DNA of 64,000 nucleotides, from contig DF236956.1 in NCBI GenBank assembly GCA_000708835.1, positions 419,354 through 483,353 on the forward strand. The letters are read 5' to 3'. Position 1 is the first letter of the stretch, and every line of letters starts with the position of its first letter. The notes beneath the pieces are model-generated. The model was not told the DNA's origin, ran no database searches, and worked only from the letters and a program-made list of their open reading frames with translations. The DNA is from Klebsormidium nitens. Lineage: Eukaryota > Plantae > Klebsormidiophyceae. The translations under genes and the position numbers were made by a program. Below are positions 19,061 to 27,677 of the stretch, piece after piece.

Positions 19061-19753
19061 TTTCACGGCGTTCAACTTACCCTCTGATCATTGTGTGCCT
19101 GTTCTTTGTAAGTGCAGGTCCGTAAGTCTGTCCTTAATGCTTCGCTTGACTAGCAACTCTGTGTTCAAACCTGCAAATTCAGAGCCAAAGGCCAACTGAG
19201 GAGAACTGGAGCATCCACTTTGGATCTGAGAATCCTTTGTTGCCGCCCTCATGGCTCGATCAATTTGCGCATAGTGGCAGACCAGAGAGCATCGCCCGAG
19301 CAGATGAGGAAAGTGATCGACAGGTTGCGCTGATCTGCTACTAGCAGCGCAGACAAGGGTTTCATCACTTAGTGACACTTGACATATTTCTGATCTACCT
19401 AAGTACCGGTAGAGCTGATTTCACACAGTTTTCTGTTCTTAGCGCTGATGTCGCTCAGAGCAACAGACTCGGCATTCATATGGTGCTTCTCCTGCTTCGG
19501 AATGTGAAACCATCTGGAGTCTGAGCTACACCGTGTTCGTTGATTTGACATACAGCAGTCAATTCTTTTCCTATTCATGATCTGATATCGGCCGTTCGAT
19601 CGCGGACTGATCAATCGGACGGTCGTAGCAACATCAATTGCCCAAAGCACAGGCTTCGTCGCACTGCAGTCACTGAGGCGCCCGGCCCGCCAGGCGCCCC
19701 GCCTAGCTCAAGTTTTCATCAAGAGTTGCAAACATCTGGTTTCTAGGTTGGTT

Positions 19754-19864
19754 CTCAGCTATTAACGAGAACGCGTTAATAGATGAGCGCAGTGCAGAGC
19801 ACTGCGGATGTGTGAAGTAAAACAGTTGGGGTAGGCAAAGTCGGCTCGTGCAGGCTCTTCACAG
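19754..19864 (-). repeat. Split direct repeat B2 (element 3' terminus)
   Basis: Identical to 20596-20706. Confidence 0.95.
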
Positions 19865-20418
19865 TCGTTCCCCGAAAAGGGTAGCGCTGCTCTGCCTTAG
19901 CCGGTTTTATTATGAAAGGGACCGGCCACGAGTGGCAATTGTTTGTGCAAATGTTCGGCTAACTGCCTAATGCACAATGCGATACCCAATGAACTACGGT
20001 ACGCTAAGAATGCAACGGGAACTGCTAAAGAAACCTACGTCGGTACGACGACTAATGTCGAATCGACAACAGCTAAACTAAACTAAACGAAACTGGGGCA
20101 ACGCCCGGGCCGCCGACGACGAAGCACCGCTCGGTCGCCGTCTTCAGGACGCCGCCGAGTCGCCATCTTCGACACGCCGCCAGTCCGCCGGAACGCCGGA
20201 TCGCCGGAACAGGGGCCCGCCGGATGAAACGCCGGGCGGGGGGGAGCGACGAGGGCGCCGTGACGCCAGGTACGGAGGACGCCGGAAACTGCTGGTACGC
20301 GGGAACGCCAGGATGCAGAGCTGAAGACGAACAGGCAACGATGCTGCGGCAAAGAAAACGAAGGCACGTGCAGCAACGGGAACAAGACAGGGCGGGAAGC
20401 AGCGAAGCTGCGGGTGGG

Positions 20419-20706
20419 TCTTGGTGGGGAAGCAAGGAGGCGCCGTCCTCCTTGCGCTGTGTGAACGTGCTGAGCGACAGATTGAAGAAATTTGTCGCGA
20501 AGACGCGGCTTTAAAGCCGCGTATCGGGTTAGAGGTTCTCGTTAAGCGGAGAACCTCCGTTTTCGACTAACTACGAACGTCGAAAACTTTCAATTCTCAG
20601 CTATTAACGAGAACGCGTTAATAGATGAGCGCAGTGCAGAGCACTGCGGATGTGTGAAGTAAAACAGTTGGGGTAGGCAAAGTCGGCTCGTGCAGGCTCT
20701 TCACAG
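20419..20706 (-). repeat. Internal B1 (20596-20706) plus A2 (20419-20595) circle-junction copy
   Basis: A2 identical to 26263-26439; B1 identical to 19754-19864; the two abut directly. Confidence 0.95.
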
Positions 20707-20814: not shown

Positions 20815-21881
20815 CTAAAAGAAGCAAGCCTCGGACTCGAACGCGCGAAGTTGGGCGATCGGGATATCCTCTTGCAGGCCGAGGTTGCGAGTCGTAGCGA
20901 GGCGGGCCTGAAGTGTTTCCCGCACGTACAGGTCCTTCGCCCGGTCAGAGCGCCAACGGCCGTGGCGCTTGAACAGGCGATCGGGAACATTGTGCGCGGC
21001 CGCGCCCGTCGCGCCGCCGCGCCGGCCGGAATGAGTCCCGTAAAGAGAAGGGTCTAAACCAAGAAGGGAAGCGGCGCCCTTGAACCAACTCAGGACCGTG
21101 TCGTAACAGGGAGTGTTGGATTTGAGGCGTTGGGTGGGAGGGCAGACGATGGTTGAGCGGATGAGGGACCCGGGGCCACGGGCAGGGTATTGACCAACTT
21201 TGAGGAGGCGTTCAAGCAAGGCAACGGGGCAGTAGCGGCCCCCCAGGCGAGCAATGAAAGTAGTATCGCCCCGAAGGTATTGGTCGGTTTTGCTGTCGGG
21301 GATAAAGAGTTCGGCGTGGGTAGGAAGAATTTTGACGTTCTGCCAGGTGAGTGCCATTAGGTCGTCGTAACGGTAGAAGGTTGTGTAGCAGATGACGATT
21401 GCGGAGAACTTCATAAGGCTGTGAAGGGTGGCAGTCGGACCGGCCCAGATTTCAAAAAGACGACGGATTTGGGACGCTAGGAACGGGCGCTTCTGGTTCT
21501 GACTGGCGACTTTGGTGCGACGAGCTGCCTCATGAGCCCTCCGAACGAGGGGATGATTGGTAGGGGAAGGCAGGCCGGCTTGGGTATGGTTAAAGAAGAC
21601 TGCGCCGGAAAAGGTTTTCAGGGGAGCTGGAGTGTTAGCGGTCCTCAGAAGACGCATCATATACAAGGCCACAGTTAACGGGCTCGACGGAAGAGCGGGG
21701 ACTTTCTTCTGAGCGCACCACTCCTTATACTGGCGCCAGGGGCCGGCGTACTGTTTGTAAGTGCCCGGGGCGCGACAGACTAAGGAGGCGTCGTGGAGAT
21801 CGACGGACAGTTGAGCAAGCTCCGGGTCGGTTGAAGAAAGGCCCGCGGCCGGGAGGTCCCAGCTTTCAAAGTTAAACCAAT
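20815..21881 (-). CDS. Tyrosine recombinase of the retrotransposon
   Basis: Open frame with core-binding region (APGTYKQYAGPWRQYKEWC) and catalytic residues R (FYRYDDL), K (SKTDQY), HxxR (HSGRRGGA), H/W (HGRWRSD) and Y (DLYVR). The 5' end is placed at a predicted acceptor (21881); the ORF track extends to 22293 in an overlapping frame. Confidence 0.92.
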
Positions 21882-21944
21882 CTGCGAATGAAAAGCAAGA
21901 AATAAAATCAGAACCGGAGCAAAGGGCAGGAAGTACGCGAACCT

Positions 21945-23983
21945 TCACGTGGAGAAGTCGCAGTCCAGAGCGTACACGTCGGAGATGGGGACGCCCTTCC
22001 CGAGGAACCGGTCGCGAGAAGCGCGCCCGGGGACCAGGACCTCGCGGCCGGCAGGGAAGTAGAGCTGACGGCGCACGAACGGAGCGAAGCCGCGGCCGGA
22101 GGCGACGCTCCCGGAGAGCAGAGGCCACCACGGGGCAGAGCGCCAGCCCAGGACCACCAGCGTCATGCGCGCGCGACACGCGCGCGCGTGCCGAAGCGCG
22201 GGCGCCACCAGGGACGGGGGAGGGAAACAGTAGTTTCGCTCGGGGATCCCCCAGTCTTGCGTGAACGTGTTCGCGGCCGCCGCGCCCGGGCACCAGAAGA
22301 AGGCGTCAAACCGAGGGAGTTTGGCGTTGTGTTCGCTCGCGAACCGATCCACCGTAAACGGACCGAACTGCTGAGAGATGAACGCGAAAGTCGCCGGGGA
22401 GAGGCCGAAGTCATCGAAGTCCCGAACTTTGCTCAGATAATCAGCGCGGGTGTTCTGCTCACGGGGGAGCCACTCGGGGCGAAGCTCGATCCGGTTCTCC
22501 GCACAGAAAAGAAAAATCTTGACGCAAACCAACTGGAGATGCTCTTTTGCTGAGCCACCCTTGGACAAAAGCGTGAAGACGTTAAGGGCATCGCCGCGCG
22601 CGATGACTGAGCAATCTCGGAGGAAAGGGGCGAAAGCGTGAAGAAGACGGAGGAGTCCTGAGAGTTCACGCCAAGTCGAAGAGGCCATGCCGTGGACCTC
22701 ATGAGCTTCCCACGCGCCGTGCGCCTCGTGGCGCTCGCTGCCAATTTCCAAGTGGCCGCCCCACCCATGGCCGCCAGCATCGTAGTAGATCACTCGCAGG
22801 ATGGAATGACGACGCCAAATGTCGCGGCACTGGTAGAGGTCCAAATGAGACTGCCAGAAACGAAGATCTGCGAGGGCGGCTGGATCGAGCGAGATCTTGC
22901 TGTACCAGGAAGAGCGGTTGGCGAGAGCGCTGTGAAGAGAGCGGGAAAAGAGACCAGAGATGGGGCCGGTCACGAGCGAAAAGGAGTTAACCAGGCCCGT
23001 AACCCTAGCGACTAGCTTAGCTGGAACGGAGTGGGGAGAGCGGAAGCACGACGAGATAGCGGAGGCGAGCTTCTGCTTCTGCAGAGAAGTGAGACGGAAT
23101 TGGCCGAAGAGGGTGTCGACAACGAATCCTAGGAACTTGACCACGTGGCTGCGCGAGAGCTGACACTTCTCTAGAGAGACGACTAGACCAGCTGCTGCTA
23201 AATCTGCGAGCACGGAGGCTTGGACACGTGTAAACTCAGCCACGTCGCGGCACGTGAAAAAGAAGTCGTCAATGTAATGGATCAGCTTGTAACCGCGCGC
23301 GCGCCAAGATTTCGTCAGCTGGCGCATCACCTTCGTAAAAACGTAGCAGGCAGGGGCGAGGCCGAAGGGTAGCTGAGTAAAGACGAAATATTGACCCTGC
23401 CACTGGAAACCGAGGTATTTCCAGTGTGACTCGCAGATGTCGATGTGGTGATAACCCGCTTTCAGGTCGACTGTAAACAGGAAGTCCTTGGGAAGGCAAA
23501 GCTCGGAGACGAGGCGAATAGACTCGTACTTGAATTTTGGGACCTGAAGAAACTTGTTCAGAAAGCGGAGGTCTAAGATAAGACGGAGCTTATCCTCTGC
23601 TTTTGGTACGACACCAAGTGGACTGACCAGGAAAGGGGGTAGGTCGACAGGAAGAATTGTGCCCGTGGCCTTCAACGTCCGGATTGCATCCGTCACGAAG
23701 TCTGCGTGTTCGAACGCTGACGGATGGTTGCGCTAATGAAACGGCTCTGTGGGAGGAGAAGAAATCCAAGGAAGCGCATACCCCGAGAGAAGAATCCCCA
23801 TCACGAAAGTGGATGTGACGAAGGACTGCCAGAAAAGGACATGGCGACGAAGTCTGTGACGCAGCCAAGGCTCCTTAGTACCAGCAGACGACTTAGCCGC
23901 GGCATTCTTAGCCGGATCCCGAAAACCCTCAAACTCAGCTGCTTCCGTAAGATCGGCAAGCTTATGGAGCGATTCGTCTGTTG
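21945..23983 (-). CDS. pol: reverse transcriptase, RNase H and DNA N6-adenine methyltransferase-like domain; one in-frame TAG at 23735-23733
   Basis: RT motifs LRLILDLR, DLKAGYHH, LPFGLAPA, YIDDFF; RNase H YYDAGGHGWGG, STWREL, GDAL, WLPREQNTRADYLSK; MT DRFASEHNAKLPRF and NYCFPPPSL. The frame continues upstream of the annotated ORF as ...HVLFWQSFVTSTFVMGILLSGYALPWISSPPTEPFH*RNHPSAFEHADFV. Confidence 0.92.
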
Positions 23984-25094
23984 CTGCGAGAAAGAGAGAT
24001 GAGCAGTGTAAGAATAAGCAGCGTAAACGTCAACAGGGAGAACGGTAAGGTCGTTAACGTAACCCGAATTGACAGAACAGAGGGACGAAGGTAGGAGACT
24101 AACCAGGGAAACGTAGTAAGATGAATTGAAAAATCCAAGTTTTATAGCGAGTGAAAAAACCTGAGAAAGAATATTAGTGGATCAGAGCAGGGCAAGAACT
24201 GGACTTGGTTAGCAATAACCAGGTCCACGTGACATCACGTCCACCAAACAAACTGGCAAAAGAGCCGAAAGGAACGAATCTCAAGTTAGAAAAGAGAAAG
24301 AGCACGTGAGTTTAGGGGACAGGAAAACCTGGATCGTGAACGTGAAGAAAAAGAAAGACAAAGAAAGAAAGCCGTTAACGTTAACAGGAACCGGGTCAGA
24401 TCGGATGTATCAACAACACTTTCCATGGGGTCGTGTAAAAACCCCGTGGATGCCACAGACATCCTGTCCCAGAACAGAACCCCATGGTCTCTGAAAATAA
24501 AAAGGTCCAAAAAGGTTTCGGTAACGTTAACGTGAAGCTTCTGAAGAGTGAGAAAGGTGCTTTAATGGTATGAACAGGAAGTCTGAGAAAGGAAGGACAG
24601 AAAGGAATAACAACAGGGAGAATTATATAAAGAAGCATGGTGAGAGAGACAGAAGCAAAGAAAATGAGGTTTTAGTCTGAGGGAAGGGAGTATTAGAAGA
24701 GAAATAGAGAATTATCAGGGACAGACCAAACATGGATGGGAGAATGGTGAATTATAAGTGATAAGATGCCATTTAGGGACATGAAAATATTGGCCAGCAC
24801 TTCGAAAGTGATCTGAGAAGGATCTGAGATTGAAAATGCAAGATAAGAATCTGCATGAGTATGAAACGCTCCAAGTGAATCGTTAACGAATTGTCAGGCA
24901 GCTCTTGTCCGAAGAATATTACAATAATGTTCTGGCAATCATACGGAGATCCTTCTATAAACTGCAACGATCTACGCTCTATGTATCACTTCTGATAACC
25001 AGGAATTCCCAAACTACCAGGAACACTAGTATGTTGTTGCAAAGGACTACTGACAGTTTGACTAATCCCTGAAGCTCTTCCTGAGTTGAAAACC

Positions 25095-26072
25095 CTAGTA
25101 GTATCTCTTCGGTGCATTCGCAGCCATGCTGGCATTGAGGGGACAATTAGTCTGGATGTGGCCGAACTGGTGGCAAGACCAACACTGGGTGTTGAGTCCA
25201 CGAGCACTGGTCTGCATGGTAGGGCTGGGAGCGCGAGGAATGGGAGCAAGGACAGGAGGGGGCAGAGGTGCTGGAGAAGGGGAACGGTTCGTAGAGAAGT
25301 ATTGGCTCTGGTAGATCGGAGAGGGGACAGGAGCAGGGACAGGACTAGGAAGAGGCTGAGCAGGTTGATGCATCACGAACTGAGGGGGGGGAACAAACCA
25401 GCCAGGAGAAGGGGAGGGGGAGCGAGAACGGAATGAAAAACCGCGGTTGCTAGGTTGCTGGGAAGAGTTTTGCTTCTGTTCCTTCGTTGGCTTGGAGGCT
25501 TCCTCGCAGGCTTTACGTTTCTCTGCCAGAGACTTCTTTGCACGATTGGCCAGTGAAAGTGTTTCAGGATCTTTGGTGGACTCCTCACGCAAGCGACTCA
25601 TCTCCATGGCCACATCGAAACCCTCAGACTCCCAATCCTCGAGAAACAGCATGCGTTCTGTGATAGCATGCTCACCTTCATCGCACTGATTCTTAAGTGC
25701 TGCGATTTGCTCTTCAGAGAGACTTGCCAGGGGAGAAGCTCCATCAAGATGTCCTTCGAAAGCTGCCTTTGCCTGAGACACTGCATGCTGTGCCTTCTCC
25801 AGAGTCTCCATCTGCTTCTTCACTTCGGGGTTCGTCACACGATCAGACTTCTTCGGCAGAGTCTTGGCTTGCAACTGAGCTTGAAGCATGGCAATCTGTT
25901 CCCTCTGCTGAGCCATATTCTGCTGTTGTTCCTTCGAGTGCTGCTGCATCTGATTGGACAGCTGTTCCATGAGGGCTTGACTGCGAAGAGAAGCCTGACG
26001 TGCTTCTTTCACTGCTTCAGCAGGGGAGTAAACCTCCTCCTCTTGCTCGTTGGTATCAGCACCACCTGCCAT
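25095..26072 (-). CDS. gag-like ORF (coiled coil, Pro-rich region, CCHC zinc knuckle)
   Basis: 325-aa ORF; Q/E/K-rich N-terminal coiled coil; CWSCHQFGHIQTNC near the C-terminus; first ORF after repeat A1. Confidence 0.9.
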   Translation of the reverse strand: MAGGADTNEQEEEVYSPAEAVKEARQASLRSQALMEQLSNQMQQHSKEQQQNMAQQREQIAMLQAQLQAKTLPKKSDRVTNPEVKKQMETLEKAQHAVSQAKAAFEGHLDGASPLASLSEEQIAALKNQCDEGEHAITERMLFLEDWESEGFDVAMEMSRLREESTKDPETLSLANRAKKSLAEKRKACEEASKPTKEQKQNSSQQPSNRGFSFRSRSPSPSPGWFVPPPQFVMHQPAQPLPSPVPAPVPSPIYQSQYFSTNRSPSPAPLPPPVLAPIPRAPSPTMQTSARGLNTQCWSCHQFGHIQTNCPLNASMAANAPKRYY

Positions 26073-26262: not shown

Positions 26263-26439
26263 TCTTGGTGGGGAAGCAAGGAGGCGCCGTCCTCCTTGCG
26301 CTGTGTGAACGTGCTGAGCGACAGATTGAAGAAATTTGTCGCGAAGACGCGGCTTTAAAGCCGCGTATCGGGTTAGAGGTTCTCGTTAAGCGGAGAACCT
26401 CCGTTTTCGACTAACTACGAACGTCGAAAACTTTCAATT
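26263..26439 (-). repeat. Split direct repeat A1 (element 5' terminus)
   Basis: Identical to 20419-20595. Confidence 0.95.
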
Positions 26440-27677
26440 GTCTGGATGATGAGCGCACATCCAGGGCGGGCGCTACAGTAGGGGGTGAACTGATATTGGC
26501 TGAAGAGGGCAACTCAAAGAACTCCGACACCGGAAATCTCGTTCTAGCCAGGCAGGTGACAAGGTGAGGAACCCGTGAGGAAGACCTTTGGAAGCTTTCT
26601 CACAATCAATAATATTTTCCTCGTGCATGACAGGATGCACATCTCAGGCCAATATCCAATTCTTGTTAACATCTGCTCCGTTCCAGACGGTGATGTCCGT
26701 AGAAGAAGATATCTCTTTTCATCTTTTTGTGGTTGTCAAAAGACTTGAGGAGTTCCTGAGAGATCGCCTTCATCTGGCAAAGTTAGAGCTTAGTACAGCT
26801 TGTACTATTAACGAAATCCTTTCGAGATTGCTTCATTTCGCTGAAGTAGGTGCTTCACTGTGTATCATGCTCTGCCGTGGTTGTGAATGGAGATCTCAAG
26901 AACCTTCTCATTCAAGAATGTGTGCACAGTTGGCACAGAATATAAGCATGCAAGCTCTTTAGAAAGGTGACCTCCAAGCAACAGCAGGGACTGATGCTTT
27001 GATCAGAGGTCAATCAGTAAATCTGCCTTAAATTCTTAAATCTGCAACGTTATCAAACTTTTCCTTCCTTTCATACTCCTTGCTCCGCTGATCTTCAAGC
27101 TGAATGATATGCATGTATTCTTCTGTTCTTGAATGGTTAGGTACTCAATCTCGTCACTGTGTTGTGTGTCAGGTCTTTGGCACAACTGAAGTCTCTTCTC
27201 CAACCAGTGCCAGATCAACATCTTTAAACGAGAAAGCATGATGGATGTTCACAGATCCTCATCTTGTACCACGTACAATTGGGAAACTTCTCTGTCATAT
27301 CACAGCCGTGCATCCCCCTTGAAGTAGCTAATCCAAGTTTTTGAATCCACAGGTACCAATTTTACCAGAAGAAAAGGGTCGCACGCTGAAGGCTAGCATT
27401 GAAACAGCCAAAGACATCTTAACAGCCTCAGGATTGCTTCAATCCTTAGAGACCTACAAAGCTGAAAATCGAGAGCGGTCCTAGCTAAAGTCCCCACAAG
27501 CGAGAGCAGTGCTGCAACAAAGGGGTACAGGCAGCTTGGGCGCTGGTTTGAAGCCCTTGCAGGCCTAGGAGGAAGCTGCCGCGAAGAGACACTCTTTCCA
27601 ATCAGCTTCTTCTGAGCGAAGGTTCGGTTTCGTGGAGCTTCTAGCTTAGTCACTTTGCAGCTCTCTTAGGAGTCATC

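Follow-up and report, generated by a model that had tools for sequence, protein, structure and literature searches.

How do retrotransposons of the DIRS order express the proteins encoded downstream of gag? The literature on them describes overlapping open reading frames (ORFs) and offers no mechanism for producing the downstream proteins (PMC3266345, PMC6681497). The question arises in concrete form in a 64,000-nucleotide stretch of the genome of the alga Klebsormidium nitens (assembly GCA_000708835.1, contig DF236956.1, positions 419,354 to 483,353; "the window" below means this whole stretch, and all positions are counted from its first letter). On its minus strand, at 26442-19752, lies an element that its sequence identifies as a PAT-like retrotransposon with split direct repeats and a tyrosine recombinase (YR). 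It has three coding regions, gag, pol and YR, and the two downstream ones have no obvious start codon of their own.

We consider it likely, with a probability of roughly 0.7, that this family is expressed in a retrovirus-like manner, by alternative splicing from a single donor within gag to acceptors in front of pol and YR. The unspliced transcript would be translated into Gag and, presumably, would also be the RNA that is reverse-transcribed, a role that we assign to it because all genomic copies retain the introns. The donor, which follows gag codon 132 in phase 1, would pair with either of two acceptors: the junction of 25676 with 23983 would give Gag residues 1-132 fused to reverse transcriptase (RT), RNase H and methyltransferase, and that of 25676 with 21881 would give the same residues fused to the recombinase. 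Pol and YR would in this way borrow the gag start codon, and the choice of splice site would fix the Gag:Pol:YR ratio. The parts of the element on which this scheme depends are as follows.

25095-26072, minus strand: gag ORF of 325 amino acids (aa), taken from the ORF list, with a helical N-terminal half, a proline-rich linker and a CCHC zinc knuckle (homologues P0001 and P0002)
25676-26072, minus strand: proposed exon 1, 397 nt, running from the gag ATG (26072) through 132 codons and one further base (phase 1)
25670-25678, minus strand: 5′ splice site AAG|GTGAGC, last exon base 25676, in the context TGC GAT GAA G|GTGAGC
23984-25094, minus strand: gag-pol spacer of 1111 nt, within the proposed 1692-nt intron 23984-25675
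23984-24005, minus strand: pol 3′ splice site, a pyrimidine tract that runs into tttctcgcag|CA, the exon starting at 23983
21945-23983, minus strand: pol exon, which encodes an N-terminal region followed by RT, the RNase H region and a Dam-like methyltransferase and closes with TGA at 21947-21945
23733-23735, minus strand: in-frame TAG that disrupts pol in the translation, 83 codons past the acceptor, where P0124 and P0125 align a Gln
21882-21944, minus strand: pyrimidine-rich stretch from the pol stop to the YR acceptor, opening with the donor-like CAC|GTGAAG and AAG|GTTCGC and ending in CAG
20815-21881, minus strand: YR exon of 354 codons plus stop

Candidate splice sites and missing start codons

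The donor in gag matches the general donor consensus at 8 of 9 positions, and no other GT in gag matches at more than six. Its location on the minus strand, the 397 nt that precede the junction and its phase all agree with the original prediction, which had been made from the letters of the window and a list of ORFs. The site lies 581 nt upstream of the gag stop, and a product spliced from it would be without the C-terminal 193 residues of Gag, the part that holds the zinc knuckle (a weak Pfam match to zf-CCHC_6). In an AlphaFold model of Gag (mean pLDDT 68), helices extend over residues 17-192, and the donor falls midway along a confidently predicted helix at residues 120-150 (window 25620-25713), so that the segment carried over into the fusions would consist of two long helices and the beginning of a third. 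We infer from sequence that the sites are used and that this segment would have a function in the fusion proteins. The original prediction went further and suggested that the shared segment might be a coiled-coil tag that targets both enzymes to the Gag particle; the modelled Gag is indeed helical there, but the donor would cut through one of the helices. Gag has an invariant Asp-Glu-Gly at the donor, and what is constrained there may be the bases of the splice site rather than the protein.

Both acceptors are in phase 1, and both bear out what had been predicted of them at 23983 and 21881. Before pol, the single G left over from the donor exon would combine with CA to give GCA (Ala), after which the pol frame follows. 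Before YR, a pyrimidine tract ends in ttttcattcgcag|AT with 21881 as first exon base, and donor G plus AT would give GAT (Asp) followed by the YR frame. The prediction had also noted that neither region possesses an evident start, and this holds in every K. nitens copy compared. The pol frame is open from about 24030 (the closest upstream stop stands 16 codons before the acceptor), and the first in-frame ATG after that stop is codon 60, already within the conserved N-terminal region; among four K. nitens copies the first such ATG stands 60-218 codons in. YR has no in-frame ATG before codon 73 in any of the same four.

The 1.1-kb spacer between gag and pol had been described as intron-like, and its composition and behaviour in comparisons fit that description. 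It is T-rich (38% T, 42% GC), contains 9-17 stops in each frame and cannot be aligned between copies: it has no match in any relative compared and bears no resemblance to the spacers in L002 or L010-L012 (relatives introduced below), against 65-76% identity in the flanking coding DNA. Spacer length ranges among elements from about 280 nt to 1.9 kb.

Conservation of the sites among related elements

For comparison we gathered 11 related elements by protein searches and look-up of the encoding contigs. Three of them are paralogues within K. nitens and the other eight lie on contigs from other samples; protein identity to the window copy is 25-88%. The paralogues (L010, L011 and L012) have intact ORFs, although L012 holds only the 3′ end of gag, and share 59-74% identity with the window copy in gag, 83-87% in pol and 73-81% in YR; L010 is an intact copy on DF237304.1. 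From the other samples, L001 and L002 are Logan contigs (L003 is an additional contig with the same gag as L002), and L004 and L005 originate in the JGI samples 3300060285 and 3300060284. The most distant members, L006-L009, retain 25-30% identity in gag and 50-56% in pol and YR. The two JGI samples, which are the source of L004-L007 and L009, are rich in long contigs that carry YR elements resembling those of Klebsormidium and belonging to several families; a related alga is probably present in them. None of the contigs used looks human.

Every relative that holds the donor site reads [G/C]AA G|GT there, in phase 1, and on the intron side GTGAG is found in the paralogues L010 and L011 as well as in L001, L002 and L005. 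How much weight this carries depends on divergence at silent positions. Four-fold-site identity between the window copy and the eight elements from other samples is 0.30-0.46; synonymous sites are thus saturated, and the silent positions of these lineages can be treated as near-independent. GGT makes up 23-44% of Gly codons and A-ending codons 19-52% of those for Glu and Gln, and from these figures a rough estimate of the probability that the donor match would recur by chance in five further lineages is about 5e-6. A scan of the coding parts points the same way: of 208 GTs, 20 are kept in all lineages, and 19 of these are forced by the protein (17 Val codons and two Trp-Trp or Trp-Cys boundaries), which leaves the gag donor alone among the fully conserved GTs in depending on a synonymous third base. 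The same comparison disposed of a weaker second donor that had been proposed at 26066. Its codon is GGT in the three K. nitens lineages only and GGG, GGA or GGC elsewhere, and we dismissed it because the GT is missing in L002, L005 and L006.

The acceptors were expected to be conserved in position and phase across copies and relatives along with the donor, and they are. A pyrimidine tract (59-89% pyrimidine overall, 59-85% in front of pol) with CAG at the homologous base precedes pol in 11 of 11 elements and YR in 10 of 10, and all three sites are in phase 1 in the window copy and in every relative. The sequence upstream of these CAGs cannot be aligned between elements. DNA similarity to the paralogues ends at the gag stop and resumes 6-10 nt upstream of the pol acceptor, and at the protein level the similarity of both pol and YR begins at the respective acceptor. 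In at least 15 additional Pol proteins from the clade, the region of similarity is directly preceded by Ala-Ala, Ala-Asp or Ala-Val, the translation expected if the acceptor bases GCAG are read together with one base of the exon.

Relatives at a greater distance, from Closterium and other green algae, differ in one informative respect: their Pol proteins (P0164, P0174, P0178, P0180, P0203, P0213 and others) have a Met of their own, in a Met-Arg-x-Arg-Leu-like motif, at the position of residue 40 here. The missing pol start is therefore a derived trait of the Klebsormidium clade, which, judging from these alignments, seems to have lost its own pol start and to have gained a 39-residue extension that begins at the acceptor.

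Taken as a claim about the family, the original prediction, in which one gag exon serves Gag, RT and YR, is strongly supported by these conserved phase-1 sites across about eight saturated lineages. It does not carry over in full to the copy in which it was first seen: the in-frame TAG at 23735-23733 breaks the window's pol, and for this reason the window copy is unable to make the Gag-Pol product. Intact pol genes of 678-690 aa are present in L010-L012. The terminal repeats of the window copy are 99-100% identical, which suggests a young insertion, and a copy bearing the TAG may have been made in trans or may have been mutated soon after it inserted.

Searches, gene models and competing explanations

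Several observations weigh against splicing as we propose it. Exon-by-exon protein searches recovered neither a spliced RNA nor a protein bearing either junction. With gag residues 1-132 as query they returned only unspliced gag proteins, and with the N-terminal 250 residues of pol only gene calls that start in the upstream intron-like region, together with gene models. When the 132-residue Gag segment was compared with 1.84 billion representatives, proteins of any length being accepted, three proteins were found, two of them fragments, and all three read through the donor as gag. The sequence that precedes the start of similarity in all fetched Pol and YR proteins contained the Gag segment only in NCBI gene models. 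Metagenome scans with a Gag-segment alignment and with a degenerate nucleotide pattern modelled on the last bases of exon 1 gave nothing, and we count this as weakening the proposal. The sites themselves add to the difficulty, as the intron side of the donor is weak in the distant elements: GTTCGT in L006, GTTTGG in L007 and GTATCA in L008 and L009. Where the donor is strong, in front of introns of 1.7 and 3.8 kb, the question is raised of how enough unspliced RNA would survive. Lastly, the copy in which the arrangement was noticed cannot make Pol.

The failure to find a spliced product in any search made also favours an account without splicing, in which the downstream proteins come from full-length or internally started RNA by non-AUG initiation, reinitiation or an internal ribosome entry site, and the splice-like motifs are by-products of composition. 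DIRS-order elements described elsewhere have overlapping ORFs without introns, and the overview by Piednoel et al. does not contain the word intron (PMC3266345). We nevertheless regard this account as very unlikely, since it leaves too much unexplained: a CAG placed exactly at the start of similarity in 21 of 21 cases, an AAG|GT that depends on synonymous sites and is retained across saturated lineages, the same phase at all three sites, and the loss of a pol-start Met that distant relatives possess.

Gene models of the family might be thought to supply the missing products. Two NCBI proteins of K. nitens, P0007 (KFL_000070570) and P0123 (annotated as "reverse transcriptase"), match the window at 100%. 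P0123, the AUGUSTUS model of the window copy, uses the same donor base, 25676, and then a cryptic AG at 23702, past the TAG. P0124, the AUGUSTUS model of another copy, uses the same pol acceptor with a different donor, and the joins in P0125, P0126, P0144 and P0229 differ again, some of them being cryptic. In the annotation of GCA_000708835.1 the family's models appear as "reverse transcriptase" or "DNA adenine methyltransferase". Nuclear genes of K. nitens were predicted by Augustus (Hori et al. 2014, PMC4052687), and models of different copies disagree with one another; they are predictions, and we dismissed them as RNA evidence, which is a further point to be set against the proposal. What they indicate is that a gene finder too chooses these sites as an intron boundary, which does not imply that the sites are used. 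The published gene models of this family look like annotation artefacts.

Two of these models bear on another explanation, in which a different donor near the 3′ end of gag is used and pol is translated as a fusion with full-length Gag: in P0124 and P0126, both from AUGUSTUS, pol follows about 280-290 residues of gag. Of the explanations that we weighed this is the least probable. Apart from one Val codon, gag contains no further conserved GT, no alternative GT in the gag of the window copy scores above 6 of 9, and the joins in P0124 and P0126 are not the same.

The pol-YR junction offers an explanation of a different kind. In 10 of 10 elements a donor-like GT stands at or just past the pol stop, 34-80 nt before the YR acceptor (21941-21948 in the window; about 9519 in L006, about 8239 in L007, about 6302 in L008 and about 10157 in L009). 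In some lineages it may be this GT that pairs with the YR acceptor, and to that extent it too counts against the use of the gag donor for both enzymes: in L006 and L007 (both GTAAGT) and in L009 (GTGAGT) it is a consensus donor in phase 1, and removal of 34-37 nt would give an in-frame Pol-YR fusion. YR would then be joined to pol and not to gag, through a short intron from the pol end to the YR acceptor that gives either a Pol-YR fusion or an mRNA of exon 1, pol and YR, and the gag donor would serve pol only. We think this unlikely. The GT is in phase 0, and the join out of frame, in L004, L005 and L011, it is in phase 2 in L008, and in the window copy, L010 and L012 it lies downstream of the TGA or TAA. 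It cannot serve YR in the window lineage because it is either in phase 0 or past the stop there, and the gag donor is the only in-frame partner of the YR acceptor found in that lineage. An intron of 34-37 nt is also very short for a plant-type spliceosome. If YR is joined to the gag donor, as we favour, the GT at the pol end may have another part to play, marking pol out as an optional exon, retained in some transcripts and skipped in others. A true overlap of pol and YR, or a frameshift between them, was considered as well and dismissed because the open stretch of YR frame upstream of the acceptor varies and is not conserved (142, 95, 36 and 49 codons in four K. nitens copies).

The element among known systems

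The assignment of the element rests on its repeats and its protein domains. The repeats are these.

26263-26442, minus strand: A1, split direct repeat at the 5′ end, 180 nt long and sharing 99% identity with A2 at 20419-20598
20594-20706, minus strand: B1, split direct repeat of 113 nt, 100% identical to B2 at 19752-19864
20419-20598, minus strand: A2, split direct repeat that pairs with A1
19752-19864, minus strand: B2, split direct repeat that pairs with B1

Their order, A1 ... B1-A2-B2, and the 99-100% identity within pairs are those of a PAT-like element; a layout of split direct repeats is known for PAT-like and Ngaro elements (PMC6681497). An atypical feature is a unique segment of 554 nt that separates A2 from B2. 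This segment (19865-20418) is GC-rich (60-69%) and is matched neither by the rest of the window nor by any of the relatives that were fetched; in the NCBI model KFL_000070570 (P0007), the end of YR is spliced to a site within it. Among the domains, an RT of the LTR/DIRS type is recognised by Pfam RVT_1 (about 23121-23609; E=6.5e-19, 68.9 bits against a cut-off of 29.6). The putative methyltransferase region matches Pfam Dam (about 22125-22394) with E=2.7e-6 and 27.6 bits, slightly below the cut-off of 28.1, and close relatives are recorded with PF05869; a methyltransferase is a feature absent from Ngaro and VIPER (PMC3266345). The YR piece has 347 homologues, many of them with PF00589, and gave no match at E<=0.01 in its own Pfam scan. 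No piece of the element matched an integrase or protease family in the Pfam scan.

The closest parallel to the proposed scheme is found outside the DIRS order. In Rous sarcoma virus (RSV) and avian leukosis virus, a single 5′ splice site that lies only a few codons into gag is spliced to either of two 3′ splice sites to give the env and src mRNAs. The likeness would lie in a donor within gag, alternative acceptors before the downstream genes, a borrowed gag AUG with N-terminal Gag residues, and an unspliced RNA that is both gag mRNA and genome. The differences are that 132 Gag codons would be carried over here, in contrast to about six in RSV, and that it is Pol and YR, not env and src, that would be spliced on. 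Retroviruses make Pol by frameshift or readthrough, and they differ also in that the element of this streptophyte alga is known from sequence alone. In foamy viruses, as proposed here, Pol comes from a spliced mRNA of its own and is not a frameshift product; unlike here, foamy Pol starts at an ATG of its own and is spliced from a donor in the leader, so that no Gag-Pol fusion is formed.

Among retrotransposons with long terminal repeats, splicing is described for Ogre (Ty3/gypsy) and for copia and BARE (Ty1/copia) (PMC3735527). As proposed here, spliceosomal introns are retained in these elements and set protein ratios. Ogre removes one intron to join neighbouring ORFs, copia and BARE splice to obtain a gag-only RNA, and none of the three is known to combine one donor with two acceptors or is a YR element. 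The element described here does not have a single intron joining two adjacent ORFs, as in the Ogre type: its donor lies well before the gag stop, and there are two acceptors. With PAT-like, kangaroo and TOC elements it shares the A1 ... B1-A2-B2 repeats, gag, RT/RNase H with, here, a putative methyltransferase, and YR (PMC3266345, PMC6681497). Published members of that group have overlapping ORFs with their own starts, and introns are not mentioned for them, in contrast to the 1.1-kb spacer and the missing pol and YR starts here. A literature search limited to sources outside subscription journals turned up no account of DIRS-order elements that contain introns or undergo splicing.

One consequence is practical: the published gene models of these elements are inconsistent, and masking or re-annotation is advisable. 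For the biology of the order, the family gives a concrete and testable answer to how the downstream proteins are expressed, in the form of two specific predicted junctions. There is, in our estimate, somewhat better than an even chance that Klebsormidium and its relatives harbour a PAT-like clade that has given up separate starts, makes Pol and the recombinase as Gag fusions and treats pol as a cassette exon, whose own downstream 5′ splice site would let the element alternate between Gag(1-132)-Pol, when pol is included, and Gag(1-132)-YR, when it is skipped. If so, it would be the first time that expression through splicing is described in the DIRS order, and the scheme of RSV would have been invented here independently. 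If the scheme is true, the unspliced RNA needs protection from a strong donor in an alga closely related to land plants, and protein ratios set by splicing, together with borrowing of the gag start, arose outside retroviruses in an element with a different integration enzyme.

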